DNA of 64,000 nt, from the NCBI RefSeq assembly GCF_964204645.1, contig NC_134035.1:5332001-5396000 (forward strand). Direction: 5' to 3'. The stretch comes from Tubulanus polymorphus. Lineage: Eukaryota > Animalia > Nemertea. Below, piece after piece: positions 19,853-44,228 of the stretch. The position numbers were made by a program, and so were the translations under genes. Within the stretch, counting starts at the first letter, position 1. Each line of letters opens with the position of its first letter. The notes under the pieces were generated by a model. The model searched no databases. It was not told the origin of the DNA and saw only the letters and a program-made list of their open reading frames with translations.

Positions 19853-20831
19853 TCAACCGAAGTGACCATTTTTTCGAAGTTGATCGTTAAGTTTGCACAG
19901 CTGTTCTACGAAGCCGTCATTGGGATAGATTTCTCGACCTCGCCTGACGAGGCGAACAGCGTCTCGGATCTGAACGCGACGTTTGATCATCAGAAACGCT
20001 ATGACTAACGTCGCCGAGCGACTGACTCCTTCTCGACAATGAACGAGTAGTTTACCTGGAGAAAACAGATTTACAGTGGAACCTTCTGATAACCAACTCG
20101 AATAATATCACAGTTTTATCGCCAATTAAGACGAGTCTAAGCTTATGGTTCTATAACCAATCTTACAACTTAGGACTAGTCTAAGCTCATTTTGATTCTA
20201 TAGCCAATTTAACTACTTAAGACCAGTCTAACGATTTTAAGAATTCAAATTGAAGAAAATGTATTATACTACATGCTGCGTACCATTTTCTCGAAGGGCA
20301 TTTTCGATGAAATCAGCAGCTTCATAGAAATACTGTGACAAATCAAATGCCGTCGCGTCAATCGCTTCAAATCCAATGAATTCAATTCCTAGATTTTTAT
20401 ATAACGACGGCCCTGTACGAACGCAGTACGGTCCACGGCCGAGCGCTGCATTCATTATATGTGTTATCCCGATACATTTTAATTCACCGTGATTTCTCGC
20501 TATCGATCTGAAAATAAATATTTTAACCGGATTGTTCACACAGGTTTACTGATTGTAGGTTCACTACCGGCAACAGAAATAGTTTTCAACAAAAGGCTTT
20601 TCCAGTATTTCGAAAATATTTCCAGCATAAGTAAGATGTGAAGCATTGCCCTCACAATGCAGGAAATTAGAATACTCACTCCTCCCCTATGTAGACATCT
20701 TTATAAACCTCATCATACGCATTCGAAGGCAATAAAACGAGTCCTCCGGTATCAGCAGTTAAAATATCATGAACTTCGTCAATAGTGCAAGATGGTTCCG
20801 AACCCTCATCGTCATTAATGGAGGAAGCCAT
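19853..20831 (-). CDS. Atypical dual-specificity phosphatase, DUSP3/VHR-like, 192 aa, 3 coding exons: 20831-20680, 20507-20284, 20055-19853
   Basis: In-phase GT-AG model of 579 nt. Contains YDEVYKDVYIGE, GITHIMNAA, general-acid loop EAIDATAFDLSQYFYEAADFI, P-loop VHCREGVSRSATLVIAFLM and IYPNDGFVEQL. Confidence 0.93.
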
Positions 20832-21688
20832 CGCAACCGACCCTACAGAATTAGAAACAGTTCGCTCTGAATTCTGACCAACACTTCAAACCCACATATA
20901 GCGCATCATTACATCAAAATTCATCAAAATCGCTGATGTTAGCATGCATTTGACCATACAAATAAGCATTAGAATTTGGATTAAACTGATCCTCCAGAAT
21001 CAACAGAATTCGAGGTTGAACAGAGAAACTCGGCTACAATAACGATACCAGTACAAGTCAGTTTAATTGCTGTATTTAATGTATTTACATTACTATTTAC
21101 CAGTGATAAGTGTGTCACATATAACAACTAACAACCATCGGGTAGAGTACTTTCTATTTACTTAAACCTTACTACAAAACTATCGTATTGTAATCGTTGA
21201 CAAAGAAAATTCAAAACGGAATTCTTTTCTTTCATCTTTAGAATCAACATAAATATTCTCACGTTAAGAATACGAATTATTACGATTACGAAACTGAATC
21301 CTTTTTTTCTAATGATGAATAAATGCAACATCGGTTTCTACGATGAAAATGAACATGATCTTCGTTTTTTTTGCATATCGGATTCACTGCAAACGAATAA
21401 AATCACGCTAGTTAAAACGATCAAATGCATCCCTTCTACAATAGAATGCTTCTCTTCTTCAGACGTTAAATCAAACTTATATTGAAGTTAGTAAGGATCT
21501 TAAATGAAAGTGTAAATTTTGCGACTTCGACAGATGAACTCCAGTTACAACGATACGAACAAATAAATTATGAGCAACGAAATGTACAGAAGTGAAAACG
21601 CACAATTCAATTCATGACATCATAAACAGTTCAACGATCGCGAGTCTTTAATCCTACGTATACACGCACGTCCGAACGAACTCAATAA

Positions 21689-24600
21689 CTACGCCAGCAT
21701 CTCTTCGATCTCGAGCAGGAAGTCGTCGTCGTTTTGATCGGTCGTCGGGATGAAATCGGTTTCCGCGTCGGAGCCGAGTAGAAGTTCGAGTTCGGCGTTC
21801 AACGTGTCGTCGATGCTCGTACGCTTTTTAAAGGACGGTTCTTCGTGACTGAAAAATAGAACAATTTAGATTTGGTAAATTCCTTCATTTCTGATCGATG
21901 CGGTATTGAGTAAGAGAGGTGACTGGAAGACTGATTATTAATCTCAGCATTTCAGAATTAATGAGCAAAACCCACAGTCGATGACTTGACAATTTATGTT
22001 CGAAGTTTTGACTAAATTTCACGTCAATGATGAAGTTAAGTCAAAACCTCAACACTGTTAGAATAAACCGTTAAATCATCAACTGTGGGTTTTGTTCATT
22101 TAGAGTAACAGTTGAATGCAGAATAAGAAATTAACTAACCACGCTTCAGCTTTCCTCTTCTTTCCGCTGCTCGAATCGTCTTTCTCCGGCACGCCGAGAT
22201 CGGGCGTCACTTTCTCAACCTTTCCATGCATCGTTGCTACGGAAACGGCTGATGCGCTTTGAAGTTCTGGAGAATTCTTGCTCGAACTCGGATTCAAATG
22301 AGCATCAGCTGAAAGTCGCGGAGCACCGGCTGATAGTCGCGTAGCATCGACTGATAGTCGCGTAGCATCGGCTGATAGTTGCGGACTAATGGATGTTAGT
22401 CGCTCACTAGCGGATGTTACGATATCTGGCAAGTCAGTACTAGTACTATTTTTCGAATGAACTCGAGTTTCTGTTTTCTGAGGTGATTTATCGGTAGTCC
22501 TACTCACGCTCATACGCTGCATAAAACTAGGTCGCACGACCTCTTTTTCCGCCGGTTTCCTAGCAACGTTCACATTCCGACCCTTAATAGCGGTGACAGT
22601 TTCCGCCGCTTTTACTGTCGCGTTAGTCCGTCTAGGAGGCGCCACGGGTCTAGGTGGCAGCACTGTGTCGTCGTCGCTATTCAAATCTAAATTATCGTCG
22701 TAATCGGATAAGTCGCTGTCGCTCGGTTTTACCGGATTCACAGTTGCTTTCGGTTTTTTAATTCTCGACGACCACGAGGACATCATACGACTCGTTGAAC
22801 TATCCCGCGGAACACCAAATGTATCTGCGGAAATAAAGCGTACAACGACATCCTTTTTAGCGACTGACCCATAACTAAATGGACAATGCACAATGTTTTC
22901 ACTCAGCGCAATTTCAACATATTTCCCTGACTTTTCCCTATTTTTTTTACTACATTGTATTTCACAAAAATTCCCCAACTATTCCCTGACTTTTTTTAAT
23001 GATAAGAAAATTCCTTAACTTTTCCCTTATCTCCAGGTATGTGGACACTGGTCAACAGTTCTGGTCAATAATTAAGATTAGTTAATTAATTACCTTTATC
23101 ATCTTGAAAGTCATCAAACATTGATGATGAATTCGGTTCGTTCTGTTCTTGTTGTTGTTTGAGTTTTTTCTCGGCCATTATTTGAGCGAATGATTTGATC
23201 TTGACGTCTTTGCGTCGCTCTGAATCGGTCGACGGTTTCGTGTCAGGTTTTTTCGGCGACCCGGCTCGCTGCGGTTCCGGTTCAACCGTCGGCTTATCGG
23301 TGGCGCGCTGGGGAAAATCATGATTCATTGCAAAAATGAAATTCAAATCGAACGAAAGAAGATTTTCGATATTTTTGAGAACGATATGCCTACCACGGGT
23401 TTTCCGAACAGCATGGCCGGCTTAGTAACAGCAGGTTTTTCAGCTTCTACAATTGAAGGACCGGGAATCAGGGCTTCTGAAATAATCGAATAAACAGAAT
23501 AAACATGCGCATGATCGGTAGATAAAATAAGATTTTTAAGACTTTCTAAGCAGGGGTCAGTTACTCAAAAGTTGTTAACCAGTGGATAGAGTTGACAAAA
23601 CTGACAATTAAAAGTCCTCTGTTACTTTTGTATTTATCTGCCACATATCTTTTACCAACTTATGAGTCCCTGGCCCCAGCAAATGTTCTTTCAAATCCTT
23701 TAGAATTTAACGCATACCTCCTTTACGGGAAGGTGGCACGTATAGACGAATAGGAGCTCGTTTGAGCAGACGTTTTTTCTCGGCTTGCTCGGCATCACTG
23801 ACAGCGGTAGAAACGCCGACTCGTTCTAGTTTCTGAGGCTGAGATTTTACCTTCTCATCGTCTGAAAATCAAAAAGAAGTTACTCACCGAAACTCATTCG
23901 CATTGACGAAATCTTAGGTTAGAGAAAGGAATGTAGATGAAATCATACTAACCTTTTTTATTCAACCCCTTGTCTGTCTTTATTTGTGCCAATGATTTGA
24001 TAACGATATTCTTCGCGTTTGGCGGTTCTGAAAATATGACATAAAAAATTTCGATTCAACTCAGTTTTAAAAGCCATTCATCAAGCGAAGTGAGAGCGCT
24101 GGAGAAAATGAGAGACAAACCTGTATTATCAGTGAGTTTTTTATCGACTACCGTCACTCTTCGTTTTAGTTTCAGTTGTTTTTCGACGTCTGCTCGTTTT
24201 TTCTCCGCAGCAGACGGATTTCTCGACGCGGCAACAGTCGCCACCTTCTCCAACTGTGCTTCCTCTGGTTGTGTTTGTTGTTGGTCTCGTTTGACGATGA
24301 TTCGACGTTGAATTTTCTGCAGGACATCGTCGTCGTCGTCGTCGTCATCAGCGGCGACAGACACCTCTTCCTTCATGGCAGCAGCGCGGCGCCAGCCTCG
24401 ACGGCGTTGAGGGGCGGTCGTTTTCGGAGGGTCTTTAATCGTTACGACGACAGTCGGTTCGGAACCATCGCTCTCAGCGACCTTGATTCAAATAGAATAT
24501 GAAAACAAATTCAAAACCCAGATACAAATGAAGCAGGAGCTCTGTCTAATAATCATCAAATCGCAGATTGACTCACATTAGATCGGGTCGTTTCATCAGC

Positions 24601-27600
24601 GAGATCCTTCTTAGTTTTTGTCTGAAATATGGAGAAAGTAAATTGGAATTTTTGTTCAAAACATGCGCCACATCTATTGCAGAGCATAGTGAAGCAGGTC
24701 ACCAAACAGACACACCATTGACAGAGTAGGGGAGACTGAGCCAAGTGACAAGTTTTTCCAGTTTTTTGTTGTCACTGTTTATCAACAACATTGTTGATAA
24801 ACAATGATAGCAAGCAAGTGGAGAGGGAGCGTTGTAGCTGTAGCATAATTTTATTTAGGGATCATTCATTTATTACGTACGCATAAAATTTGACCTTTTC
24901 TACTATTGCACTGACCCCTCCCCCATCCCCTGCGTACGTAATAAATGAATGATCCCTTACCAGAACAGATATTCAATACCTTTTTCGACTTTTTCGGTTT
25001 CTTAGGAGACTTCGTCGTTGACTTTGTTGGGTTAACGATTTCGTTAACGACTTGGTCAACCTCCTCAGCAGTATTCAAGTCTTCATGCTCCGTCGTCGAT
25101 GCGCTGTTTTCATCATTCTCTTCCTTTCCATTTTCATCATCTTCGTCGTCGCTACTACTGCTGCCGCTGTTACTATCGCTGTCTCCGCTCGTGCTTCCGC
25201 TGCTACTCGAGCTCCCGCTGCCTGAACTTCCACCTTCGTCGCTACTCGATTCCGCATCGGTTCCGCTCGCCGACGAGGACCCCGATCCGGACTGTGATCC
25301 AGATGAGGAAAGACCATCGGCGTTTTCCGTTTCCGATTCATTCTCGTCGCTCGGCGCGTCTGCTCGTCGAGGTACGACGACCTGATTCACGGATGACGAC
25401 ACTTTCGGGGCTATCCTCTTCGTAGCCGTTAGAACGCGTTTTTGAATATCGTTCACTTCGATTTTGCGACTGTTGCGATTTTTACGGCTCCGAATTTCGG
25501 CCAAACTTAATCCTTTCGGTTGAGCTTTGACAACCGCGACGTCGCCGGGCTTATGCTTTTTGCGACGAATATCAGCAATACTCATACCAACATTTTCTAT
25601 TTGCAGCGACGCTGGATTCTTCTTGTTCTTCTTGTTCCGAATTTCTGCCAAACTCAAAGATTTTACCGGATTCGTCTCGAGATTCTCTTTCTTCGATTTG
25701 CTACCGCGTTTCGCCGGTGACTTGACGACTGCTAAATTGATTACTCGATTTTTCTCAAGCGGTCCGTCGATCGCCGGTTTGATGCGTTCTTTCTGATTAG
25801 CCGCGGCGACGACTGCCTTCGATTTCTTCTCAGCAACAACTTTCGCATTTTTATCGACTTTCGTTGCTTCGGGTTCTGATAAATATGAGAACGAAATCAA
25901 TTTTGAACATATCAGTAATTCCTGGATATGGAGGGTTTTCAAGGAGGTTTAATTAAAGGGGAAAATTTCAAATTTCATGACCCAATTAGACTCCTTAATC
26001 GGTACTGTTTATCTCTGTAAACCGTTGATTCGGTGGTTTTGTAAGCACATTTTTGCCCTTGATACTGCTGAACTCGTTTTTTTTTTGGTAAATTCCTAAC
26101 TGGGTAAAAAATATCCTGGTCACAACACCACCGATTTAGGTGTAGTCTCACCAGAAATTTGCTTATTTCTCAAAAGTGAAGGAGTTTTGAAGGAGCTTCG
26201 GGCATTTTGCTCATAACAAAGGAGTTTCAAGCACCTTTAAAAGCAGAAATCGATTTCAAAACAAGCGAAATCCTTCCCGTGTAAAAAACTATTCAGCCTA
26301 CGATGCTTACCCTTTTTCGGAACGCCTAGTTTCTGATCCAAACGCTCTTTCATACTGAGTAGTGCTTTATGTCGGACGGCATTCTCTAAACTCATTACAT
26401 CACCGGCCTCTGTACAAAAGAATAATGCAATGACTAGATAGCATTGTGTCGTTTAAGGCAGAGAGGTCGGTTAAGGGTTTATTTTAATACACTTACCCAT
26501 TTCGATCAAAGCTTTTTCAATAGATTGTAATTTCTGTTCGAGTTGTTTTCGCTGCACAGGATCTGCAACCGAACATCAAATATTAATACACGAGTCGCGT
26601 TCTTCGCATTTATGAAATGCCTTCGGTTTAACTTACCGGTGACTATTTCTTCTTTAACAGCCGTTTCTGGTTGTTTCGTTTGAGGTTGTTCGGGGAGTGG
26701 TTTCGTCGCTATGTCCGGTCGACTGCGCGGGCGACCACCGCGTGGCGGACTTCGAAGAGGTCGCACTAAAATACATAAAAACATTTTGATCGAATCAAAT
26801 AATTCTCTGCGAGGGGGATTCTAACTATTTAAGTGCATCTACACGCAGTGCTGCGCATAAATCCGTGATGGACTTTCATATTACTGATGTAATTGGTGCT
26901 TGAAAGATAGCAACACCTATCAATCATAATTAAATATTAGTAACTTATAATACATCGCACTAAAGCAGTATGCCCGTTAAACAACACACTGGAGTGGATG
27001 TTTTTTTAATTTTCAAATTTATCAGCAATACTTTAGGGCATTAATTAGTCAGCAATGAAAGTATTAAGGGGATACCGTAATCAATACCTCTCGCGGGTGG
27101 GCGATCTCTAAAATCAGGAATCCGTAGAGGACTACGAGGACGATCTCTTCTGAACGGTGGTGAACGACTCCTGCGATATCGCGGCGGAGGTGAACATCCT
27201 CGTCTCATCGGACTGAACCGTCGATACGGCGGCGACCGTCGATACGGTGACCGCGATCTCGTCTGTCGTCGCTGCGGCGACCGCGACAAACTACGACTGA
27301 ACGACCGTCGCCGCGGCGACCATGAACGACTGCGATCGCGTCGATTGCGATTACGACCGACGGCGGCCGAATCTCGCGCGACCGGTTTCTCGATCGGCGC
27401 CTCCTCGGGTTCCGGCAGAAAATCCGGATCGACGTCGGCGTGAACGTCTAAAATATCGTGTTCTTCTTCAACATCATCAACCCATTGTTCTTTTTCTTCT
27501 GAAAAATGAAAAATATTCAATATTAATTTCAGAATTTTAAAGTCTTGATTTGTTGACAAATCACAGTGGATTCAACAGAAAACGATGATCACCTGCGACA

Positions 27601-28567
27601 GGTTCATTTTCAGGTCGTTTTCCAGTAAGATTTTCTTCTTCAACGGACTGTTTTTCATTATCTTGTTGTTGTACAATTGGTTGTTTATTCGGTCGAACAC
27701 TTTTCACCGGCGACGACGTAGCACTTTCAGGATCTGACGATTCTACAATCGAACAGCAAATATTGGATATACGGACAATACAGATACCAAATTTTGAAAT
27801 TCTTGTTGCGCAGTTTTATGAGTAGGGGAGATCTGTGAATAAATAGATAGATACCTTCACCCATATGAACGATAACAGGATTGATTCTCGGAGGGGACGG
27901 AATCCTCGGTTCTTCGGGAATCGCAAGTGGAATCTGTACTAAATTACTCGTTACAATCCGTCTTCCGGGGCCTGAAATCAAACATCGAAGACGCGTGTCA
28001 GCAAAATCTACCAAATCTGAAAAGCCTGTATTTTTTTAAATATTTTCAACTGCAATTGATCCTGGGGAGATACCTGATTGAGAAGGAGGCTGCTGCACGC
28101 TCGGTGTATTCTTGTGTTTGTACAGACAATGAGGCCTAAGACAACCGCCGGGCTGCGTTTCCCAGAAACACGCCATTTCACCTCGATTACGATTTATCGG
28201 CTGAAAAACAGTTCAAACAAATCGATAAATACACGTTTGCTCAGATGCTTATTTTTGTGCCGCGATCGCTGTGGAAAATGAAAAGCTCCTCTCACCTGAG
28301 GTGTGTGTATATCAGCGTGTCTGAATGGGCACCTGATTTGATCGCAAATACCCATCTTCCATTGATCGCAAACCATTTCACTTCCGAGAGCTTCGCGACA
28401 ATGCCGATATTGACACGCCGTACCCTGTTAACATAGAACAGCGCGTAAATTTTTTCATCGACACTTTCTATTAGAAGTAATTAGAAGTCGGAAGAATCGA
28501 ATGTCTAATATACCTTCGTGCATTGAGCATTATAGAAGTAATAGCAATCATCTCCGAGTAAAGACAT
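21689..28567 (-). CDS. ZC3H11A: Zinc finger CCCH domain-containing protein 11A orthologue, ~1318 aa, 18 coding exons: 28567-28514, 28424-28296, 28200-28074, 27971-27855, 27742-27593, 27498-27076, 26765-26637, 26562-26497, 26409-26311, 25875-24980, 24621-24577, 24481-24121, 24027-23953, 23861-23718, 23476-23394, 23307-23094, 22824-22140, 21848-21689
   Basis: N-terminal triple CCCH: GDDCYYFYNAQCTKGTACQYRH, VCDQWKMGICDQIRCPFRH, CFWETQPGGCLRPHCLYKH. Also repeated KS(L/F)A(E/Q)I motifs and acidic C-terminus DDDFLLEIEEMLA*. All junctions are GT-AG and phase-consistent; internal boundaries are less certain than the termini. Confidence 0.88.
21960..22100. mobile_element. Palindromic MITE-like element in the last ZC3H11A intron
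   Basis: Arms AATGAGCAAAACCCACAGTCGATGA / TCATCAACTGTGGGTTTTGTTCATT plus inner GTTTTGACT / AGTCAAAAC. Confidence 0.75.
23552..23677. mobile_element. MITE family A, copy 2
   Basis: GGGGTCAGTTACTCAAAAGTTG...CTGGCCCC, similar to 18834-18961. Confidence 0.75.
24858..24956. mobile_element. PIF/Harbinger-type MITE, 99 bp
   Basis: Perfect 26-bp TIRs GGGATCATTCATTTATTACGTACGCA / TGCGTACGTAATAAATGAATGATCCC with TTA on both flanks. Confidence 0.88.
25915..26245 (+). mobile_element. Degraded copy of the 29308-29681 element
   Basis: Shares GGATAT..GGAG(G)TTTTCAAG, AAAATTTCAAATTTC, AAAATATCCTGGTC.CAAC.CCACC and TTTGCTTATTTCTCAAAA in the same order. Confidence 0.7.
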
Positions 28568-28899
28568 CTTTAAAACTGAGATTTAACGTCACATGAACAG
28601 TAATTAAACTAGTAACATTTCACCGCGTTCTTCTTGAGCTGCAGGTTCTTCTACAAATGTATGTATCGTAGCGGGTTCTTCTGTGATGTTCCACTGGTTC
28701 TTCTACGAACGTGTCGTAATTTTCTTCAGCGAATTTTCTCTTATCGACGCGTCAGTAAACCTGGAAACAACAACAATTATCCAAACCAGTTGATGATCTG
28801 AAAAATACATACGAAAATCATAGTCAACTAAAGTCGAATAATGACAGCCTTCTTATTTTCGATGATATCAACAAATCATAATTGATTAACATCAATAAT

Positions 28900-31101: not shown

Positions 31102-32439
31102 GGATTTATTCATGGAACAGTGAAAAAGGGGTCAAGCACTGGGGACCTCTTACTCAACTTTCAGAGATATATCCTTATTTTTTCAAAACAGCAACCGACA
31201 CAACGTCCCCACAACAGCAACTGCAACTCTCAGCAGGCCTGCAGTCGGCGTCAGGGATCGTGGAGAGAGAGGAAACGCCAGTCCGCTCCTCCAGTCCCTG
31301 TCCCTCCCATCACACATTCACGACCTGTTTTCACGGCTAATGCCAACTCGACACGTTTCCAATCAAACATATTTACCTTGTACACGTATTACTTTTATCG
31401 GTTATCTATTTCATTAGGCCTTATTACCTCAAAATCGGCGAGAAAAGAGGTTTTATCGGAGACAAAAAAACGCAAAAAAATTGCTGATCGAAGCTCTCAG
31501 AAATCCATTTCCGGCTGGAGTTAAATTCATCACCTGAAACGACGATGTCCACATCTTTTATTCGATGAAGGTTAAAACTGGACCTTTTTACTTGAATTCT
31601 TAGAAGATTCATATACAAACAGCTTTAACCGAACAGGCCTAAGAACAATATCATTATTTATGCGTTTGATGCGCAAGGAATGGAAAACAATCTTTTTTCA
31701 AATCAATGAAAATTTATTTCTGAATGGTCGTTTTGAAATTGTGTTTGTTACATCAAAATCGCATAAGCATTTTTACCTACCTAGATACTAATGATCTTTG
31801 AAAGCGGTCCAAACTGGTGCTGGTTTGATTTTTTAATATTCGGCCGCTGACCACTTAAGTTTCAAAAACCTCAGAAATTCAATTTTCCGGGTGTGCGCTT
31901 TTCACCAAGTTTCGACTATGACATATCAAATATGTAATTTTCAATCTAAAAATCTGACTCTTTATTTCGGTTTATCTATAGTATGGGGCTTTTATTAATT
32001 ATCGACACTATCCTCCAGCGTAGTTTCCGTTACAATAGAGGACTCGTTATTGGATCTTGTACGCGATTGCCAATGACGTCACCTCTACGTCATTGATAAT
32101 AACATGTAGCGCTCTGACTATTCCTCTCGATTTAGCATAAATCTTCAGTTTATGCCTCTCTGGACACAATAGAAGCACACCCCAAAAAATCTATCAAAAA
32201 TTAATTTCATATCATTCATCAAAGAGAAGCCTACTAACTAATTAGCTATCACATCAAAGATGATTTTACAGTAGAATCACGACTATCGGATCGAAGTGGA
32301 TACACACGTTAAATTGTGAAATACCCCGGTACCAGCGTTTTGGGTTTTCTCGGAATGGGAAATTTGGTTTAGAAAAAACCATATAACTAAATATTTCATT
32401 GATCATTTGCCTAGATGTAGCCATTCGAGAGGGAATTTC

Positions 32440-32930
32440 CACGGCCACGTGCTGATATTATTATTTACAAATGACGAGGGCTGACGTCATCGACTGTCGC
32501 GTCTGGTATTTAGTAACGACAAAGAACCGATGGAAACTACCGAGTCCAAGCTCAGTGCGGGCTTCAACTAAATTCACTATTATTATCCATCTTCGTAGTC
32601 GGGTAATTACTCATTTTCGCATTAATTTCTTCGTTAATTTCTCTAGAATTGAATGATATCACCCGTTTCGATAAGCTTCACATAGAAATGGTTTGATTTA
32701 GGGATTTTTGATGGCCGTTGTCGGGCCGCATTGTATTGTAGGACACAAAATGGCGCCGGGCGGCGGCGGCGTCTCCGGCCGGGTAGTGACGTGACGCGCG
32801 CGCGCGAACCATCCTTCTATTTAATTAATTCACGATGGGCCACTTTTATTACATGGTTCTTCTGGTCGAAACTATTTGACTCGTTGGAAGCCAATCAGAA
32901 TCAAACCACCCTATATCTGCCCATAAAATT
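32440..32930. promoter_or_regulatory. GC/CpG-rich promoter-like region upstream of the multi-HTH gene, possibly bidirectional
   Basis: CACGTG ~32446, TGACGTCA 32482 (also 32074), YY1-type CAAAATGGCG 32746, GC-rich run 32750-32810, CCAAT 32891. Confidence 0.55.
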
Positions 32931-33296: not shown

Positions 33297-36200
33297 ATGG
33301 AATCAATGGATCCTGAAAAGACGACAATTTCTGCTGAACCGACTGAAGTCACAGCAGCGCCACCTATTGAACAAAACGAACCTGACAAATTAGAGAGTGC
33401 GTTGGCGGCCATATTCGAAGACAATGTCACGGTTTACGAGGCGGAGGCTTCATTCGGTATTTCGAAAAGCGTCATTTGCGATTGGATCGCCGGTAAATCG
33501 AAACTGTCGGAACCGGTTTTTACCGATGAGGAAGAAATGGCGGTGGTCGAAATCGTCGCGAACGGGCAATTAACGAGTCAACAGATAATACAGTCGGCTC
33601 AAACCAAGGCGACCGAGCTGTCAAAAATACAAACGCCCGGTTATCGGTGGTACGCCACGTTCGTCAATCGATGGCCCGAGTTGAATCTGACGAGACCGAA
33701 AATACGAGTCGTCGTCGACGACGATGGAGTTGAGCAGGTCGTCGAGGGTGATGACGATTCGGCGCTCGTCCCGTCGAATGTAATCGCGCAAGCGTTGATG
33801 GAATCAGGAATCATAGAGGAGGGAGCGTCGACGAGCGGACAAGTCGGCATGGACGCTGCCACCGCAGATGCGCAAACAGCGGAAGAGCAAACGGAACAGA
33901 TATATATAGTATCTGAGGCGACACCGGCGTTACCGACGGAAACGGATGCCGCGGCGACGACGGCTCAGCAACCACCCATCGAAGAGATTCCGGTCGTGGA
34001 ATCGGAGATCCAGGAGAGTGCAGAGAATCAGGGGACGGCAACTGTGGAAAATATCGAGATGACGCCCGTCGAGGCGCAGCAGTATATACAGCTTCCCGAC
34101 GGTACGTTCCAATTACCGGAGGGAGCCATCGAGGTACACGGCGACCAGGCGGTGTTAGTCACCGATCAGCAGCACGAATCTCACGTCAACATGGAGGGAA
34201 TCAATATAGAAGATTCCGTTCCAATTCATGTCGGTCCCGGTACGGATTTATCGCAGTTCGAGGACGGCACGGTGATAGTGGGAGAGGACAACGTCACATA
34301 TATCATCCGTCACGAGCAGGTGCCTGCGGAGACCGAACAGACTGCCGGAGTCGAGATGCCGATCGTTGAAATGCCAATGGAATCGACGCCAGGAATCGTC
34401 GAACCGAATGAATCGACGGTGATCATGACGACCGTAGATAAAGATCATAACGTCAGCATGGAGGGAATCGCTACGAATCAATCGGCAACGGGTCCCGTGA
34501 CGAATATACTGACGGCTACGGACAGCGACGGGGTGACGAAATTCGTTATCAAAATGGACGACACCGGTAACGCCGAGGACAACCAGTCATTCGCGTTACA
34601 GCAACTCGCCGACGCTGTTCTCGAGAATTACCCGACGACGGTGATCAGCTCTCCGTCGTCGTCGAAGATCGAGTCGTCTCGAATCGCGCCAACGATCGTA
34701 ACGCCGGCGCGCACGTTGAGCATGTCAACAACCGTCAGCGGGGCGGGCGCCGCGGTCGTCGTGGGTAAACCGAACATCCTGAAACGCGACGCGATGCCGC
34801 CGGCTCGCGTGGTCGCGTCGGCGCGCGTGGCGACCGTCACGCGTCCGGCGTATAAACCGGTTGCGCGTATGAACAAGAAGGGTTCCGGCGAGCCGTACGT
34901 GCCCGAACCGATACCGTGCGAAGACCCGCAGCCAACGCCCGGCACGCACATCTACGACCCGTTCACGATGGCGCAAGAACGCGCGCTCGTTCAGAAGATC
35001 GTGTCGCGTTGGAATCGTTTGAACATCACCGATCGCGACGTGTTGAACATGGGTAAAGATCTAGCGGTCGAGATGAACTTCGATCCGGAGAGTTTACCGA
35101 CGTGGAAATGGGTCGATAGTTTCATCGATCGTTGGCCGGAAATGATAATCATCGAACGAGTGCCGAAAGATCGTCGATACGTGCGGCCGCCTCCGCCGCA
35201 ACCTCGCGATCGCTCGACGCCGATAATGACGCCGGGCGTGCTGGCGCAGAAAGGTCGCGGGCGCGGTCGACCGACGTCAGCCGGCGGTCCGCAGACGAGC
35301 AAGAAGATATTCACCATGGAAGAGGAGAAACTGTTGACGAATATAATCAAAGCGATGCGCGAGGAAGGCCGCGTGACAATGAGCGATATTCTACGCGCCG
35401 CAGCCGAATTGGCGAAAGAGTTCAATCGACCGGCGCCGAGTCGCGATTGGTATTACCAGTTCGTCGCTCGCTGGCCAGAAATCGGTATGCCGATTTGTAA
35501 GAAATTCGGACTGTGCGACAATCGACGCAAATCGCAAGGGGGCAAAACGGTCGCCGCGACGAAAACCGACCCGAAAACTATGGAAACCGTGTTCGTGAAC
35601 GTTTCGAATAAACTTCAAATCGAACCGAATCAGGAATTGTTGGCCGACATTTCGTCGGACGGCTCACGTAAACGTAAACTCGAAGATCCCGATCTGTTCT
35701 CGCCAGATACGCCCGATTACGACGGCCCACCGATGAAAAGGGGTGTCGGCCGACCGAAGGGTTTCACTACAAAGAGGATGTCGCCAAGAGCTCCATCTCC
35801 ATGTGAGTATTACGACTATTACTTCACACTAATTGATTATTGAAAGTGAAGCTTTAGAATTGAAATACAATTTTGATCTGCTTTGATAAAAGTTCAGTAA
35901 TATTTCTTTGAAATTAAGCATGGTTCCCACAGTGCAGGCAAATTGGGAAATATTTGGGAATTAGAGAAATTTTTCTCTGACCAGAGAAATATTTGGGAAA
36001 TTCATTTTCCTGGTACTGTTCACTTTTGCGGAAATGGAAATATACAATCGAAATTTCGCGGAGTTTAGACTTGACAAATTTCTTAATCTTTGAAACAAAT
36101 GAACAACGATGCAGGGTATGTGAGGTTATTATACTTAAATTTTCAGCGGCCGCTAAACGTCGATGCGCGTGGAGAGACGAACAGCTGGTCGCTGCGGTGA

Positions 36201-39200
36201 ACGCGTTGATGGAAGGAGGACGAATGAAAGAGGTTTCGTTGCGTTTCTGTATCCCGCAATCGACGCTGTTCGATTACGCGCACGAACGCAAGAAATGTTT
36301 GTTCACGCCGAGTCAAGAAACGCAGATCGTGAAATTAGTGTCGGATAAATATAAAACGCAGGATAAGAGATTGACGGTTCAAAAGGTTTGTATTCGAAGA
36401 TAGAGAATCCCTACCACCACACCCCTGCTAAAAACTCTCTTAGATGTTCTCCTGTTCGAGGGATCTGCTTCTGGTTTACTCAGCAGTTGTAATTTAAGTA
36501 CAACTGGGTGGCCGCTTAGCTGACAAAAGTTAGTGAAATTTCTTTACTTAAAAAAAGTCAGGGAATTTGATTTTTAAAAAAGCTCTAAGTCAGGGAAATT
36601 TATTAAAATCAAACAGTTTCCATGTATATCTTCGTATTTGACTGTGTTTATTGATTGGAAAACATGTCCAGGAATTATCCAAAAAAAGTACATCAAATAA
36701 ATGTGGCCACCCTGTCTAAAAACATTGTTTCTTCGGTGGTAAGAACAAAAAAACTGGACTTAAATCTAAATCATAACTCGGTCATCGGTAGGAGGCCAAA
36801 CTAGCGATTCACGTTGAGTTATCGTTTGTTTAATTCCAGGTTTGCGAGCTGGCGTCCACAGTCGGCGAGACCAAGTTCAAAATCGGTCCGCTCTGGTATA
36901 AAAACTTCGCCAAACGAAACGAGGAGGTGAAAAACTACGTGGAAGAAGACGCGCTGGCGAGTGAGGAAGAGGCGGAGAAACGCAAGACGAAAGAGGAGAA
37001 TAATTTTGAATCGGGCGCGGAAGAGGAAGAAGATGATGACGAAGATATGGAAGTTCCGGCTGATGAGGATGGTAAATAGATTTGATTTTTTGAATCACCT
37101 GTCTAACTCCAAGAACAGTTTACGATTCATCAGTTTTACCAATTTGGATAGTAGAAATGTGTCCTGTTTAAGAGATTATATGCGATTATTAACTTGCATC
37201 ATATTTAAGATCAGATAAACATTTCAACAAATACCCGATTATCTCCTTTTAGCGGTGTCTACCATTAAAGCTAATTTTCAACTGTTTTAGGGTCACCTGT
37301 AAACGGTGTATTGTGTATATTTTCAGCTGATAGCGATGATAACGGAGAAATGGATGAAGACTTCCAGTACACTCCCAGACGTAACGCGCGCGGCGCCGGT
37401 AAGAGGAGTATCAAACCTAACAGGGCTTACGGCGACGATTTCATATCAGCTTTATCTACTCCTATCGGACGTAAGTACAATCATTGAAATGGACTGAAAA
37501 TTATTGAATTTTAAGTATGGACCGATTTATGGACCGAGTTTGATTCGTCATAGAGAAATTTGACTTATCGTTTTTGGAATTTATCATTTTCGACAGGAAA
37601 AAATTCGAAAAGCTCCGACGATACTCCCGTCAAAAAACAACATGCCGTCAAAGAGGAGAAAGGTGAAAAATCGGCGACTGATGCTGATCGAAGCGGTAGT
37701 CCCAGTAAGTTCAGATGCACCGCACCTAGAGCGTCCTCTATTGCCGCAGTAGCATTCGCGGTTCCCGTGCACGTTCTACCTTTTACTAGTGAACACATAC
37801 GAACCAAAACTAAAATAGCAGTTAGATTCGAATTCATTGATGAATGAAAACCAAAAAAAAACAATGATTTTCAGGTTTTTGGAAGCGCACGACGTGGACC
37901 CCGTCGAACATGTTGAAAGCGATGGCCGCCGTCGAGAAGCATAAAATGCTGCGGTCGGAGGTGTCGAAAAAATACGGCATCCCGACGTCGACGCTGGGAG
38001 ATTACCTCGAGGGACGGTCGAGTCGGCAGAAACTTCACGACGCCGTGAACAGCTCGAAGAAATCCGGCAAAAAAAGAGATGCCAAACCGAAAGGTAGGTA
38101 ACGAAATTCATGTTGTAATGGTGTTAGTGTAGTGTATAAATGGTTCCATGAAATGTGTTCACTAGTTGAGGTAGATCATTGCTCTGTTAATGGTTCCATG
38201 AAATGTGTTCACAAGTTGCTGTTGATAATTATCGCAGTCATTGAAATTACCAGACCTAGTTCCACAGTTCTGAATATTCCATTTATCGCAACTGATTTTC
38301 GTTGAAACTTATGATTTTTGGGTCGCTGCGGTTAGGATTTGCCCATTGGAACTAGGTTCAAATTAGTGTGCGTAATATCTTGTCGAAAGATGTAAATTGA
38401 TTTACAATAGGAATTAAATTGAAAAAAGGGCTGCATTTGAATGATCTGAGTTTTGAATTTAAATGGACTAATGTGCCAGATTTTCACTCTTGTATCCCAA
38501 ATACTTGGTTCACATTGTAACGCAGTAGTGCGGTGTTCTGGATTTCAGAAGAAAAGAAATGGAAGGACGCCGATTTACAAAAGGCAGAAGACGCCGTGAA
38601 GTTCGATTCAGTACCGCTGAAAGAGGCAGCGAACAAATATTCAGTACCGCTGTCTGTACTTTATGAACGAGTTTCTGGAAAACAGTTGTTTAGTGTGGCT
38701 GAAGAGAGAGAAGTGAGTACCGTGTACTGTAGTCATAGAAATTAATCAATTTAACCCATACTCAATCAGCAGCCATTTTAACTCGAAATCAATGGTTCAA
38801 TAATCCCCTGGGATGAGATTAGTCCAAAAATGATCTTAACTCTTGGGTTGTTAGATACAGAATTCTATGAGCTATGGTCTATAGAGCTAAGTTGGTCATA
38901 GACTATTCTTAGGTCTTAGCCATGACAATGGAACCAACCCCTGGGCTCAGTTTATAGTTGATACTTGCGTCCAAAAATCAGGATCGCAGTCCATTTGTTC
39001 ACTACAGGAAAATTACTTTCAATCCCGATTTCCCGCGAACCGGATGGATTTTATTGGTCTCAGATGATCCGAATTTTGCGGAATCTACGGGGTATAAATG
39101 AATAACGATGTAACGTTTGTCGATTCAGGTTTGCCGATCGATTAAAGAACTGAAAGAACAACTGAAACGCAAAGTCTCCATCGACGAAGTGCTCATGTTC

Positions 39201-42200
39201 GCGCAGGAATTCTGGGAAAAACTCGGCAAGGAGGAATTCAAATTCGACGTGTATTGGCTGAAGCCGTTCATACGACGTACGAAAATGGAGAACCTCGTCG
39301 ATCTGGCCAGCACGAGCGTTGACGATATGGAATCGGAAACGGAGGAAAATGAAGCCGACGATGATGATAACGAGGAAGCGGGCGTCGACGATTTGGAGGA
39401 CGAAGGAACCGCCGACGAATCGCCGAAGAAATCTAAAACTAGTGAGTTATATATGCCGAATGAGGTGGAGGGGATGACCGATTTCATGAAACCAAAAAAT
39501 GATCAAGAATCTTGACAAGCAAAACAGGGAGGCCACTTATCTGCCAATCGGGGAAAATTCTTCTTATTTCTAAAAGAAATAGAAGCTAAAAATCTTGGAA
39601 AGGAGACTGCTAGATCACGCGTATAATAAAACAGTTTCTAAGTTTGACATATTTGACTGGATTCTTAGCAGATCAAGTCCGGGAAAACAACGCATATGTC
39701 AGTCAGGAAATAGTCGGGGGAAAAGATTTGATATGATATCGTTAATTAACAATATTTCCTGTTTAAAATGAACACGAAATGAATTGTTTTTTCAGAGCCT
39801 GTCGGTTATACGGCCGTCGATATCGAGGACGCTTTGAAACTCGTCAAGAAAGGAACGTCGGTGAAACAGGCCGCCGCCAAATACGGAATACCGCACGACG
39901 TACTGGACGACTACAACACCGGTAAAATCAAACGAGTATTCGAATTCAAAGAGGAAAAACAGATCGTACACGGATTGGAAGATCTTCACTCGGAATGCGT
40001 TACGTTAACGAAACAGGACGTGTTCCTCGTCGCGTATAAAGTCGCCGATAAACTCGGTAAAGACGTCACGTTGAACCGAGAGTGGTACGACACGTTGATA
40101 CAAGGCTGGCCGAAACTCGCCGACATCATAGAGGACGAAGAAGACGAAAACGACGAATTCACGATGACCGAAGAGGACGATTTGCCGTCGACGCCGGTGA
40201 AGAAAACCGTCAAGAAAGAGGAGGCCGACGGCGATGACGATGCGGATAAGAAGGATGCCTCGGCGACATCGCACGTCGGTAAAGGAAAGCTAGTCGATAG
40301 TAAGGGGAAGAAAGTCGAACCGAAATCGAGCGCCAAAAAACAGCAGAAAGAAGAAAATAGCGGCGATAAAAAAGAGGCGGATAAGGATGAGACGAAGGAT
40401 GTTTCGTTGGAAGGTCGGAATGAGAAGGAGGTAAAAGACGGCGGCGGCGATAAGGAGGTGAAGGATAGCGAGGAAAGCGTGGTCGGCGATGGTAAAGAAG
40501 GTGAAGATGAAAACAAAGTGGTGAAAGTAGAAGAAACCGAGGAAGGAAATTCTGAAGAAAATGGTGAGTTTTATATATATTGATTATTTAGTAAATTGCA
40601 TCATGAGACTTACAGATTGAACCTGAATTGACATTTTTTCCTCCAGTCGCGAACGAAAAAGAAACTGATTCCACCGCTGCCGATGCTGATGCTGCTGCTG
40701 CTGCTGCAGCTGCAGGTGCGAATGAAAAACAAGATGAAAGTATGGAAGTGGAAGAAGAATTTTCGAATGATGAATTCTTGAAGTCTCTACCGGAGCCACC
40801 ACCTCCAGAGGAAGAGGAAGAGGAAGAGGAAGAGACTACGACTACTATTCCTATGTATTACGAGCTGCCTGTACCAGAGGCACCCGGTATGTAAACAGTG
40901 TAACTTCAAATACCTTTCTCAAACTTCACAGCTCAGATTTTCACAAACCATGAACCCTCTAACTTTAATGGGGGTGGCCAATTGTCTTGAAAACCTGCGA
41001 AACTCAGGAAATCGATGAATGAAAAATGAATAGAGTGTAATATTATTCTAAACCTAGATATTTCTCTGATTCACTCTGGGAATTTGTGTAATCACATGGA
41101 AAATTTTGGGAAAACTCGGGCGATTTGTAAACGGGCGGAAAGTGGCGCCACCCTGATATTGATCACTTCTATAAATTCTGTATCTTGACGCTCTATTTTG
41201 ACTGATGTTTGAAAATGTTTAATTGAAATGCAGTTGTGGCGAGAGCCTCGTGGACGAACGTCGACGTCGCTCAGGCTCTGAAACTCGTCGACGCCGGCAT
41301 GACGATGAAAAATGCCGCCGCACAATTCCACATTCCGTTAGCGACGCTTCACGATCGACATTCCCAACGTCTGCGCGCCGGACTCACCAAAGCGGAAGAG
41401 GTGACCATCGTCAAATCAATCGAAAGGCTTTATCAAGAACTCAAACGAAAGGTTAGTTACGCGAGCCCTCAACGAGCAGAGCGACACTTGGATCGATGAG
41501 AGACTACTCGGCTACTAGTCCTTCAAATAACTTCTAAATCACCCCCCTCCCCTTCCTCTTCTCTAATATAATTAATTAAAACATCATACAAGTTTTTATT
41601 TGTCGTCCTATTAATTTTACAGGTTAGTTTGGCCGAAGTGTTGTATTTGTCTAAAGAGTTGGCGGCGAAATTCGGCAAGAAAGATCAGTTGAATATTCAG
41701 TGGTTCACGGTATTTGCAAAGAAATATCCGCAACTGAAGCCACTCGTTCGTAAAGACCGTAGCAAAGAGAAAACGGCTGAAAGCGTTCAAACTAAGGCAG
41801 CCGGTGAAACGGATGAGATGAGTCTTAGTCCTTCAGGTTCGTTCGATAACTATTATGCCCATTGTCCTGGACCTAGTTAGCTATTCAATTTCATCTGAAT
41901 TTGTTAGTTTTTGAAGTGATGATAGGTACATAATCAGGGTTGCCACTTACCTGGAAATCAGGGAAATTTCTTTTTGAAAAAGTCGGCATTCTGTAAAACA
42001 AAAAAAACCTAAAAATCAGGGAAATATGTTAAGATGCCAGATGCGCGTAAAATCAAACAGTTTCTGTCAATGTCTTACGTATTTGACTGTGTTAACTGAT
42101 CGGATTCTTCACAGATCAAGTCAGGTGAAATAACATACATGTCAGCGAGTAGTCGGGAAAAAGCAAGTCAAATTAAAGTGGTGGCCCTGTTTATGGCTGA

Positions 42201-44228
42201 GAGTCTATATTTCTTGAGGTGGACCATAACTTAGCGATGAGCTAAGTTCTTGACCTTTTATGTCGACGAGGATTTTATTTCCAATGATTAAACCTTGAAG
42301 ATTATCCACTTGTCCAGATATTTAGTAAATGGTCTATATAAATTTACATATTAATGTTTAGTATTTTATTGTAGTGCGTAACTTAAGTGGAGCTGATCGT
42401 CTGACGGTTGCTATCGACGCCGTACGCAGCGGACAGATGAATCTGGGCGAAGCGGCGCGTTATTACGGCGTGGCGCGTACGTCTCTACAGGATGGCGTCG
42501 GTAAATCGACCCACACTCCGACCACCAGCCACGCGGCCATTAAAACTCTATACAAGAAAATCGACGACGTCTTCAACAAAACGGAAGAGGAAATATTCGT
42601 GAAAGCCCTCGGCGGAATCAGCGGACTCGATCGTAAACTGCGTTATGCCGAGGTGTGCGACATCGCGCAGACTCTCGCGCTGGCGTTGCGCCGCGAGTTA
42701 ACGCCGCCCGAGAAGTGGTTAGCCGGATTGTTGGCGCGGTGGCCGGAGATGAAAGACATCGTCGACACGGACGTTTTAAACGTCGGTTTCGTCGCGACCG
42801 ACTGTATCCCGATACAGATGATCGCCGACAGCATCGCCGAGGATATACGTAATTATCATCGTATGGTCGAAGAGGCGAAGCTGGAACTGGCGGCGACGAC
42901 GTCGACGATGATGGGAGAGAAAGCGACGGCGAAAAAACCGGCATTGTTGAGAACGGCTGCGACTAGTGCATTGAAGAAAGGTCAGTTTCACATCAACATA
43001 GTCTTTCTGCACCTTCTCAGATATTAGACATTTTGTCAGATATTCTTCCAGTTGCTGGTTGTCCACATTTAACATACGTTCAACACTTCACCTGAGATAT
43101 TTTTAATCGAAAATGAACTATAAAACCAGACAGACATTTTATCAGCACACTTTCAAAAACTCGTCCACACTCCACGTGCATTCAGTGGTTCGCATGAAAC
43201 ATTTTTCGTTGAAAATGAACTACAAAGATTAGCGATTCAACCCCTTAATAACTTCTTTACTTGTCCCTAGCCACTAGTCCTCAGAAAATGTCTCCGTAGA
43301 ACTTGACCTGAGACATTTTCAATTGTTCTACAAACTCCATACAGATATTTTATCGGCACCCTATTCATCAGTCCAATTGTGTATTTAATGTTATATGTAT
43401 TAATTTCGTGCAGGTTTCACACAGAAGGAAGAATATGAATTCGTAATCGCTCTTCAAGAACTCGATCAGAACGATCAGCTGGTCACGTTGAACACGGTAA
43501 TGACCGCCGCGCTCGGATTGGCCCGTTCCCTGAAACGAGACAAAACGTTCATCAATCAAAAATGGCTGCTCGACTTCGCCAAACGTTGGCCGTCGATTCA
43601 AGAGATGGTTTTCAAGAGTCAGGATAAATTACAAGCGCAGAAGAAAGGCAACGAAGACGAGACGGTCCCGCAGCAGCAGCAGCAGGAAACCGCCGAGATG
43701 GTCTCCATCCCGACGACGTCGAGCGCCGGCGAACAGGTAACGATAATCGACGCGAGCGGAAACGAGGTTCCCGTTATAACGACCGAGCAGACGATCGTCG
43801 AACAACAGCCGCAAATTCTGCATCAAGTCCTCGAAAATCAGGAGATACCGACGACGATCGTGACGTCGGAACAGCAGATCATCAATTTACAACCCGGCGA
43901 CGACGGTCAACAACTCGTTCAACAATCGGCCGACGGCAATTTCGCCGACTTTGAAGGAATGCAGGTCGTGATGACGACGAGCGGCGACGCAGCGATGACG
44001 TCGGCCGACGGCGGCGACGTGACAACGCAAACGATCTACGTGTCGGCCGACTCGCTGTCGATGCTCGGTCAGGACGTCGACATCTCGCAGGCGATCACCG
44101 AGGGACAGATGCTCAGCGACGGTCAGATTCTTCTCACCGGTCAAGACGCCGACGGAAACCCGATCATACTGACGACGTCTGCCGCTGCGTTAGAGGGCGC
44201 CGGCGAGGTCGCCGTCAAGATGGAGTAA
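33297..44228 (+). CDS. Uncharacterised ~2261-aa nuclear protein with 7 psq-type HTH and 9 CENP-B/Tc5-type HTH modules and 2 AT-hook-like motifs; 14 coding exons: 33297-35802, 36147-36385, 36840-37071, 37327-37470, 37597-37704, 37875-38093, 38549-38712, 39129-39441, 39796-40563, 40647-40886, 41234-41451, 41623-41836, 42375-42980, 43414-44228
   Basis: All 13 introns are GT-AG and phases join into one 6786-nt ORF. Recurrent motifs: W...(L/M)..A...V...M...AA.KYGIP.STL.D (psq-like) and F(T/S)..EE..(L/I)V...A..LA...W...F..RWP (Tc5/CENP-B-like). Also GRGRGRP and RGVGRPK. Confidence 0.88.
36505..36714. mobile_element. MITE family C (GGGTGGCC(A/G)C ends); related copies at ~22920-23050, 39527-39725, 40970-41155, 41936-42188 and 57700-57870
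   Basis: GGGTGGCCGC...GTGGCCACCCTG termini. Internal blocks TCAGGGAAA, AAAATCAAACAGTTTC and TATTTGACTG recur among the copies. Confidence 0.7.
43080..43360 (+). repeat. Dispersed repeat with internal duplication; second copy at ~58880-59030
   Basis: GAAAATGAACTA...CCAGAC.AGACATTTTATC.GCAC.CTTTC shared between the two loci. Confidence 0.65.

Follow-up and report, generated by a model that had tools for sequence, protein, structure and literature searches.

A predicted giant host protein of Tubulanus polymorphus with an array of helix-turn-helix units related to pogo-superfamily transposases

The combination of a psq-type and a Tc5-type helix-turn-helix (HTH) unit is the signature of Fot and Fot-like transposases, whereas CENP-B, JRK and TIGD carry CENP-B_N and Tc5 units and have kept the DDE domain (PMC7386202). 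Among Drosophila proteins, Dan was reported to be largely disordered, to bind widely across the genome, to form condensates and to act in nuclear architecture (PMC11178893), CAG was reported to be without a DDE domain (PMC4231638), and Ebd1 was described as a transcription cofactor that bridges beta-catenin and TCF (PMC5510812). Across lophotrochozoans, psq and CENP-B-type factors have been reported to be independent domesticates (PMC10027918). Here, a stretch of 64,000 nucleotides from the 267.8-Mb genome of the nemertean Tubulanus polymorphus (contig NC_134035.1, here C11:5332001-5396000; referred to as the window) was analysed. Its predicted gene at positions 33297-44228, called the array gene below, encodes seven psq-type and nine Tc5/CENP-B-type units, i.e. 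16 HTHs in one protein. There is good support for a nuclear host protein domesticated from DNA-binding domains of the pogo superfamily, as the first-pass annotation of this DNA had proposed for a pogo-type transposase N-terminus. The array gene, for which the DNA and profile searches described below found no second copy, is probably a host gene for a nuclear multivalent regulator of chromatin or transcription, with an array that arose from one captured module.

Gene model and helix-turn-helix modules

The gene was rebuilt from six-frame translations and splice sites. Local translation of the joined model gave a single open frame of 2,261 amino acids (aa) followed by a stop, and this frame, together with consensus splice sites, bore out the intact 14-exon frame of about 2261 aa that had been noticed initially. 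All 13 predicted introns were of the GT-AG type and 83-538 nt long, with G at +5 of 12 of the 13 donors and T at +6 of all 13; both together occurred in 3.5% of other intronic GTs. An additional upstream coding exon near 32750 was discarded: its ATG did not lie in the reading frame, and the site lacked a consensus donor. One transcript across the 14 exons is suggested by the sequence. Exon joining rests on predicted splicing, which would suit several small genes or transposon fragments joining in frame by chance; however, the 13 short consensus introns, the 2,261 codons without a stop, the host-like exon composition and the presence of linker-only exons without transposon similarity make such an explanation very improbable.

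The following features were assigned (window coordinates, plus strand throughout; basis in brackets).

33297..44228, plus strand: predicted coding sequence of 14 exons (2,261 aa and stop, predicted splicing)
33297-35802, 36147-36385, 36840-37071, 37327-37470, 37597-37704, 37875-38093, 38549-38712, plus strand: exons 1-7
39129-39441, 39796-40563, 40647-40886, 41234-41451, 41623-41836, 42375-42980, 43414-44228, plus strand: exons 8-14
33372..33686, plus strand: pair 1 in exon 1, psq P1 (33372-33497) and Tc5 T1 (33516-33686) (profiles)
33699..34646, plus strand: aa 135-450, acidic (net -55) and rich in Ile, Val and Leu, possibly activation-domain-like (composition)
34962..35144, plus strand: lone Tc5 T2 (outside-only profile, E 6.9e-9)
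35250..35276, plus strand: AT-hook-like motif 1 with a GRP core, within a basic stretch (motif and composition)
35310..35483, plus strand: lone Tc5 T3 (Pfam PF03221 above cut-off and outside-only profile)
35736..35765, plus strand: AT-hook-like motif 2 (motif)
36167..36929, plus strand: pair 2 in the cassette of exons 2-3, psq P2 (36167-36292) and Tc5 T4 split by phase-0 intron 2 (profiles)
37892..38017, plus strand: lone psq P3 in exon 6 (PF05225 above cut-off)
38560..39287, plus strand: pair 3 in the cassette of exons 7-8, psq P4 (38560-38685) and Tc5 T5 split by phase-0 intron 7 (Pfam, profiles)
39807..40121, plus strand: pair 4 in exon 9, psq P5 and Tc5 T6, fold like the CENP-B DNA-binding domain (Pfam, model, PDB match)
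40122..40886, plus strand: acidic low-complexity linker in exons 9-10, about 33% Asp/Glu (composition)
41251..41739, plus strand: pair 5 in the cassette of exons 11-12, psq P6 (41251-41373) and Tc5 T7 split by phase-0 intron 11 (profiles)
42386..42751, plus strand: pair 6 in exon 13, psq P7 and Tc5 T8 with a long linker (profiles)
43416..43601, plus strand: lone Tc5 T9, opening exon 14 (profile)
43602..44225, plus strand: C-terminal tail, Gln-rich (14%), hydrophobic and acidic, possibly activation-domain-like (composition)

Circularity was avoided by building the module profiles solely from outside transposases and elements resident in the genome; these profiles were run on every open stretch in the window (1,542), and each exon was searched separately against Pfam and the databases. 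With the outside-only profile, all seven psq units ranked at the top, with E values from 1.7e-12 to 4.9e-4 (best decoy 6.4). Of the Tc5 units, six were found whole at E 2.3e-12 to 3.5e-7 (best decoy 0.44), and exon halves of the split units T7 and T4 gave E 4.6e-4 and 0.03, respectively. Unit T5 was weak with this profile (E 1.3) and matched Pfam HTH_Tnp_Tc5 at E 0.0018. The seven psq-like and nine Tc5/CENP-B-like HTHs of the first-pass annotation were thus recovered, T5 by way of Pfam, and their arrangement as six psq+Tc5 pairs, three lone Tc5 units (T2, T3 and T9) and one lone psq unit (P3) was confirmed. [quoted passage not shown] The best Pfam E value for CENP-B_N on these exons was 0.063, and the first HTH of the pairs was psq.

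The AlphaFold model of the exon-9 pair (P5+T6; predicted local distance difference test, pLDDT, 92) contained two three-helix units. Its best PDB match was 1hlv, the DNA-binding domain of CENP-B (Z 8.5, root-mean-square deviation 2.6, 61 residues), and its psq half matched LCoR 2cob; the Tc5 HTH fold of the CENP-B type was thereby seen in the exon-9 module, one module only. A feature search of the ESM Atlas returned one weak Tc5 cluster (0.76) and one blank. A remnant of the post-Tc5 transposase helix was considered in exon 13 and was not supported.

The HTH units made up 37% of the chain, and the remainder was mostly acidic and of low complexity (net charge -126). The long acidic linkers are probably disordered. 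Two further regions were acidic, hydrophobic and partly Gln-rich and may be activation-domain-like, and two basic stretches carried AT-hook-like motifs with a GRP core (aa 652-660 and 814-823). Both motifs had been noticed initially, and composition likewise agreed with the acidic linkers and Gln/Ile/Val-rich regions described then, for which an activating role would be conjectural.

Origin of the array

It was checked whether the locus retained features of a transposon. When all six frames of the window were scanned with a profile for the DDE domain of the most closely related subfamily, no remnant was detected (the best E value was 0.53, while controls reached 1e-49), and DDE_1 was not found by exon-wise Pfam. 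Around the gene, no convincing flanking terminal inverted repeats (TIRs) were found. No second copy was detected, since the DNA matches listed were to intronic repeats only and the module profiles showed no other array. Accordingly, the transposon hallmark present was the psq+Tc5 N-terminus, while DDE_1, TIRs and multiple copies were not found. These results agreed with the first-pass annotation, which had seen neither a DDE domain nor TIRs and had named their finding, together with many genomic copies, as evidence that would overturn its reading. Similarity to a transposase, an intact frame and absence of transposon hallmarks, which are among the criteria of domestication of Feschotte and Pritham as used in PMC4231638, were all observed. 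For purifying selection and conserved synteny, two further criteria, the searches yielded no orthologue, and a host-like codon make-up gave support of an indirect kind only. The GC content at third codon positions (GC3) of the exons was 0.59-0.71 and their observed/expected CpG ratio was 1.7-1.9; the neighbouring host gene had a GC3 of 0.43-0.61 and a matching CpG level (1.6-1.9), and resident pogo open frames differed from both (GC3 0.35-0.42, CpG ratio 0.6-0.85). Introns 2, 8 and 12 were noted to contain a short dispersed repeat in copies related to one another (window 36581-36660, 39539-39702 and 41935-42181).

To find the closest relatives of the modules, the module profile was searched against 1.84 billion representatives, which gave 4,998 matches. 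The best single-module matches were transposases of the psq+Tc5+DDE_1 type, along with derivatives of these, and the named ones came from abalone, mussel and sea star. These transposases have an 'RWP' motif in common, which was complete in five of the nine Tc5 units of the array gene, with its W kept in six. Comparison of the module profile with the N-termini of RWP transposases gave a probability of 99.8% (E 1.9e-27), and the match stopped just past the RWP motif. In the tree, the Tc5 units joined the RWP subfamily separately from the RHP elements resident in the genome (92/86), a grouping that was partly due to construction because the outside sequences had been found by the profile of this gene. 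The donor therefore appears to be the Fot-like psq+Tc5+DDE_1 'RWP' subfamily and not the Tigger line of CENP-B/JRK/TIGD. The first-pass annotation had taken the psq+Tc5 pair to be the N-terminus of CENP-B, JRK and TIGD also; this did not hold, as these proteins carry CENP-B_N+Tc5 (PMC7386202).

Other relatives of the module were observed in the genome. At least eight near-identical copies of a pogo-type transposase (L042-L049, e.g. C12:10201268-10202929) were present, and in most of them a frame of about 740 aa was open; this family was recently active and is not the donor of the array gene. The frame of the multi-copy psq+Tc5 elements L028, L035 and L039 stopped within Tc5, apparently where an intron intervenes. 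A gene at C5:4149405-4150760 (minus strand; L055:906-2261) combined a Tc5 unit, a degenerate DDE domain and a C-terminal PHD-like finger; its GC3 (0.58) and CpG ratio (2.0) were host-like, and TIRs flanking it were not found. It is a probable second domesticate of the same Fot-like lineage.

The exon structure was informative about the multiplication of the module. Ten of the 13 introns were in phase 1, for which the chance was 0.0004-0.0015 given a background phase-1 fraction that is generally 28-33%. The three phase-0 introns all lay inside Tc5 units at differing positions, as expected for later gains. Units P2-P7 each started 4-8 codons past a phase-1 acceptor, and T9 started at one. All nine inner cassettes were divisible by 3 in length, so that skipping of a cassette would leave the reading frame intact. 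A known route of capture is splicing to an acceptor that lies upstream of a transposase frame (10.1101/2020.05.07.082677).

The phase-1 cassettes and the short linker that they have in common (see below) fit one capture followed by cassette duplication. When seven Tc5 units of the array gene were constrained to one clade, the tree was 2.7 log-likelihood units better than the free tree and was not rejected (approximately unbiased test, p-AU 0.545); free trees did not recover the modules of this gene as one clade. The trees are consistent with a single origin and are no proof of one. It would follow that the psq+Tc5 end of one Fot-like RWP transposase was captured long ago, probably through splicing onto an acceptor immediately upstream of the psq helix, that the DDE domain was lost, and that the module then multiplied within the gene as phase-1 exon cassettes, whose copies diverged to about 25% identity. 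Serial capture of several separate Fot-like insertions, each with its own acceptor, would likewise place P2-P7 4-8 codons after an acceptor, as splice capture predicts (10.1101/2020.05.07.082677), and would suit the failure of free trees to return one clade. However, the common short linker, the identical intron phase at every cassette, the clade that was not rejected and the failure to find DDE remnants between modules render it rather improbable, and it would alter only the origin of the array and not its function. Thus, a single origin with duplication is suggested.

Recognition features, possible role and neighbourhood of the gene

In the six pairs, the psq recognition helix and the beginning of the Tc5 unit were 10, 12, 12, 12, 15 and 29 residues apart, compared with 20-24 residues in 18 transposase-type modules. 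In five of the six pairs, the linker was 5-12 residues shorter than that of the transposases, and the gap in the alignment took out the linker including a Gly-Pro motif. In the structures of related bipartite domains (CENP-B, Tc3 and Pax), the linker runs along the minor groove. The core residues of the psq units were largely kept, while the DNA-contact positions varied. Because the linker was shortened, the charge lowered and the recognition-helix Arg mostly lost, it is unlikely that the pairs have kept the geometry in which their ancestor bound the ends of transposons. Of the two roles that the first-pass annotation had considered, a host chromatin or transcription factor was favoured, and a reader of TIRs was disfavoured by the short linker, the loss of Gly-Pro and Arg and the less basic psq units.

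The array gene product, a probable regulator that would bind DNA, would most likely touch several separate sites on DNA or chromatin at once, each weakly and each with its own preference. The HTHs would hang on flexible acidic tethers, the AT-hooks would serve AT-rich DNA, and the activation-like ends would recruit or bridge transcription machinery, as Dan and Ebd1 do with fewer domains.

Several observations weigh against such a regulator. The median charge of the psq units was 0 compared with +4 in transposases, and the recognition-helix Arg, invariant in the donor subfamily, was kept in only two of seven psq units. Given the net charge of -126 and the altered recognition helices, many units may no longer bind DNA. 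Structure prediction by module, a check named in the first-pass annotation, yielded a CENP-B-like fold for the exon-9 pair, which alone folded confidently, whereas exon 13, modelled from a single sequence, gave no usable structure (pLDDT 42). Furthermore, the trees comprised about 77 columns with long branches and outside sequences selected with the profile of this gene, and no orthologue was found, the best BLAST score of any exon being 55 bits.

The low charge, the retained structural core and the variable DNA-contact positions would suit a protein scaffold, in which most HTHs have lost DNA binding and act in protein interaction and in which the AT-hooks, together with one or two units that are still intact, provide access to chromatin; Ebd1, which bridges beta-catenin and TCF (PMC5510812), would be a precedent. 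Such a scaffold is nevertheless unlikely, as P3, P7 and T3 still scored well against profiles of DNA-binding families and non-Arg residues at the same helix position were seen in other transposases too.

A dedicated reader of repeats, whose modules recognise different transposon ends or satellites and silence or organise them, would be in line with the transposase origin, the diverged recognition helices and the many psq+Tc5 pogo copies in the genome and, circumstantially, with a 38-kb satellite array 18 kb upstream and a satellite relic in intron 13. It might then be likened, with equally little probability, to the fission-yeast CENP-B homologues or to an invertebrate counterpart of KRAB zinc-finger arrays. 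This role is also judged improbable: the shortening of the linker in five of six pairs means that the two-HTH geometry used on TIRs was lost, the resident elements examined belonged to the other (RHP) subfamily, the flanking regions looked activating and not repressive, and the nearby satellite was almost restricted to C11.

The array gene was found head-to-head with a ZC3H11A-like CCCH zinc-finger gene (PF15663; window ~21650-28570, minus strand, start near 28567). One further feature was assigned between them.

32000..32820, no strand: CpG-rich probable promoter between the array gene and its ZC3H11A-like neighbour (function presumed)

This stretch contained two CRE (cAMP response element) sites, TGACGTCA at 32074 and 32482, as well as CCAAT boxes and a YY1-like site, AAAATGGC, at 32747. 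Mammalian ZC3H11A hosts another domesticated transposon gene, ZBED6, which is from a different superfamily, and the parallel with this locus is probably a coincidence. An exon of a dual-specificity phosphatase gene (PF00782) was present at window 19856-20107 on the minus strand. The upstream satellite array had a 101-bp unit and occupied window 1-14845 (about 38 kb in total, C11 about 5309255-5346845); a second array of this satellite was located at C11:4.51-4.54 Mb. A link of the 101-bp satellite to the centromere was considered and was unsupported, the 38-kb array being almost restricted to C11. The relic in intron 13 (window 43018-43226) was a decayed dimer of an abundant 109-bp satellite, arrays of which occurred on C6, C8, C9, C10 and C12, many near contig ends.

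Other arrays and known systems

Comparable proteins in which no DDE match was found were detected in other organisms: Magallana gigas A0A8W8HXK3 (2,283 aa; nine BrkDBD and eight Tc5 units, at least 17 HTHs), Sphagnum CAK9198581.1 (1,534 aa; five psq+Tc5 pairs), the mayfly Ephemera KAF4531325.1 (four psq and six Tc5 units) and the P0010/P0017 family (2.6-2.7 thousand aa; 11 Tc5 units). In the tree, their modules clustered within their own protein or family, apart from those of the array gene, which points to convergent arrays built independently and not orthologous. No homologous protein was returned for aa 540-835 of exon 1 or for exon 14, in a search whose limit on length would conceal full-length relatives. 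The array gene is apparently a lineage-restricted variant of pogo domestication with an exon-cassette structure. The first-pass annotation had known no named gene with 16 such HTHs; the arrays found here are indeed unnamed, but the Magallana protein shows that the architecture is not unique, and the gene is therefore less surprising than was thought. ENA contigs of another organism also encoded several large proteins in which psq units, up to 9-11 in number, were dispersed (P0001, P0005 and P0011); P0001 was one uninterrupted frame, and members of these three clusters sat on shared contigs.

No published description of giant DDE-less HTH arrays was found in the literature searched. It is conceivable, though doubtful, that the array gene is a member of an undescribed and repeatedly evolved class of catalytically empty 'poly-DBD' (DNA-binding domain) proteins and that its own phase-1 cassettes, which preserve the frame, are alternatively spliced into isoforms that read repeats or organise chromatin. 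If so, isoforms with different sets of DNA-recognition units would be an invertebrate counterpart of zinc-finger arrays. The array gene offers a testable case for two questions: how transposons give rise to multi-domain transcription factors, and whether arrays of HTHs can stand in for those of zinc fingers.

Compared with known systems, the array gene shares the bipartite psq+Tc5 module and the RWP motif with Fot-like RWP transposases (Haliotis XP_046560004.1, Patiria XP_038059040.1 and Mytilus XP_076107558.1). However, these have one module and a DDE domain, whereas the array gene has 16 HTHs, 13 introns and a short linker, and in the searches above neither DDE, TIRs nor a second copy was found. 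Pipsqueak and LCoR have a similar psq HTH but lack the Tc5 partner; the psq repeats of Pipsqueak are closely spaced, usually with a BTB domain. Drosophila Dan, Ebd1/Ebd2 and CAG are likewise host proteins with CENP-B-like HTH DNA-binding domains, but they have far fewer domains, namely one or two pairs. CAG, unlike the array gene, is from the pogo/CENP-B_N line, and orthology with Dan, Ebd or CAG was not shown.

CENP-B, JRK, TIGD1-7, POGK and POGZ are also domesticated pogo-superfamily genes, and the Tc5 HTH superposes on CENP-B 1hlv. They nevertheless have one module, with DDE kept in all, and the first HTH, which POGZ lacks, is of the CENP-B_N or BrkDBD type (PMC7386202); the CENP-B_N+Tc5 combination with a kept DDE_1, typical of CENP-B, JRK and TIGD, was not seen in the array gene. 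Thus, while described domesticated pogo genes have one DNA-binding module and have kept DDE in vertebrates, the array gene would represent another route, in which the enzyme was discarded and the DNA-binding end was multiplied through exon cassettes. The same design in oyster, mayfly and moss shows that it arose several times.

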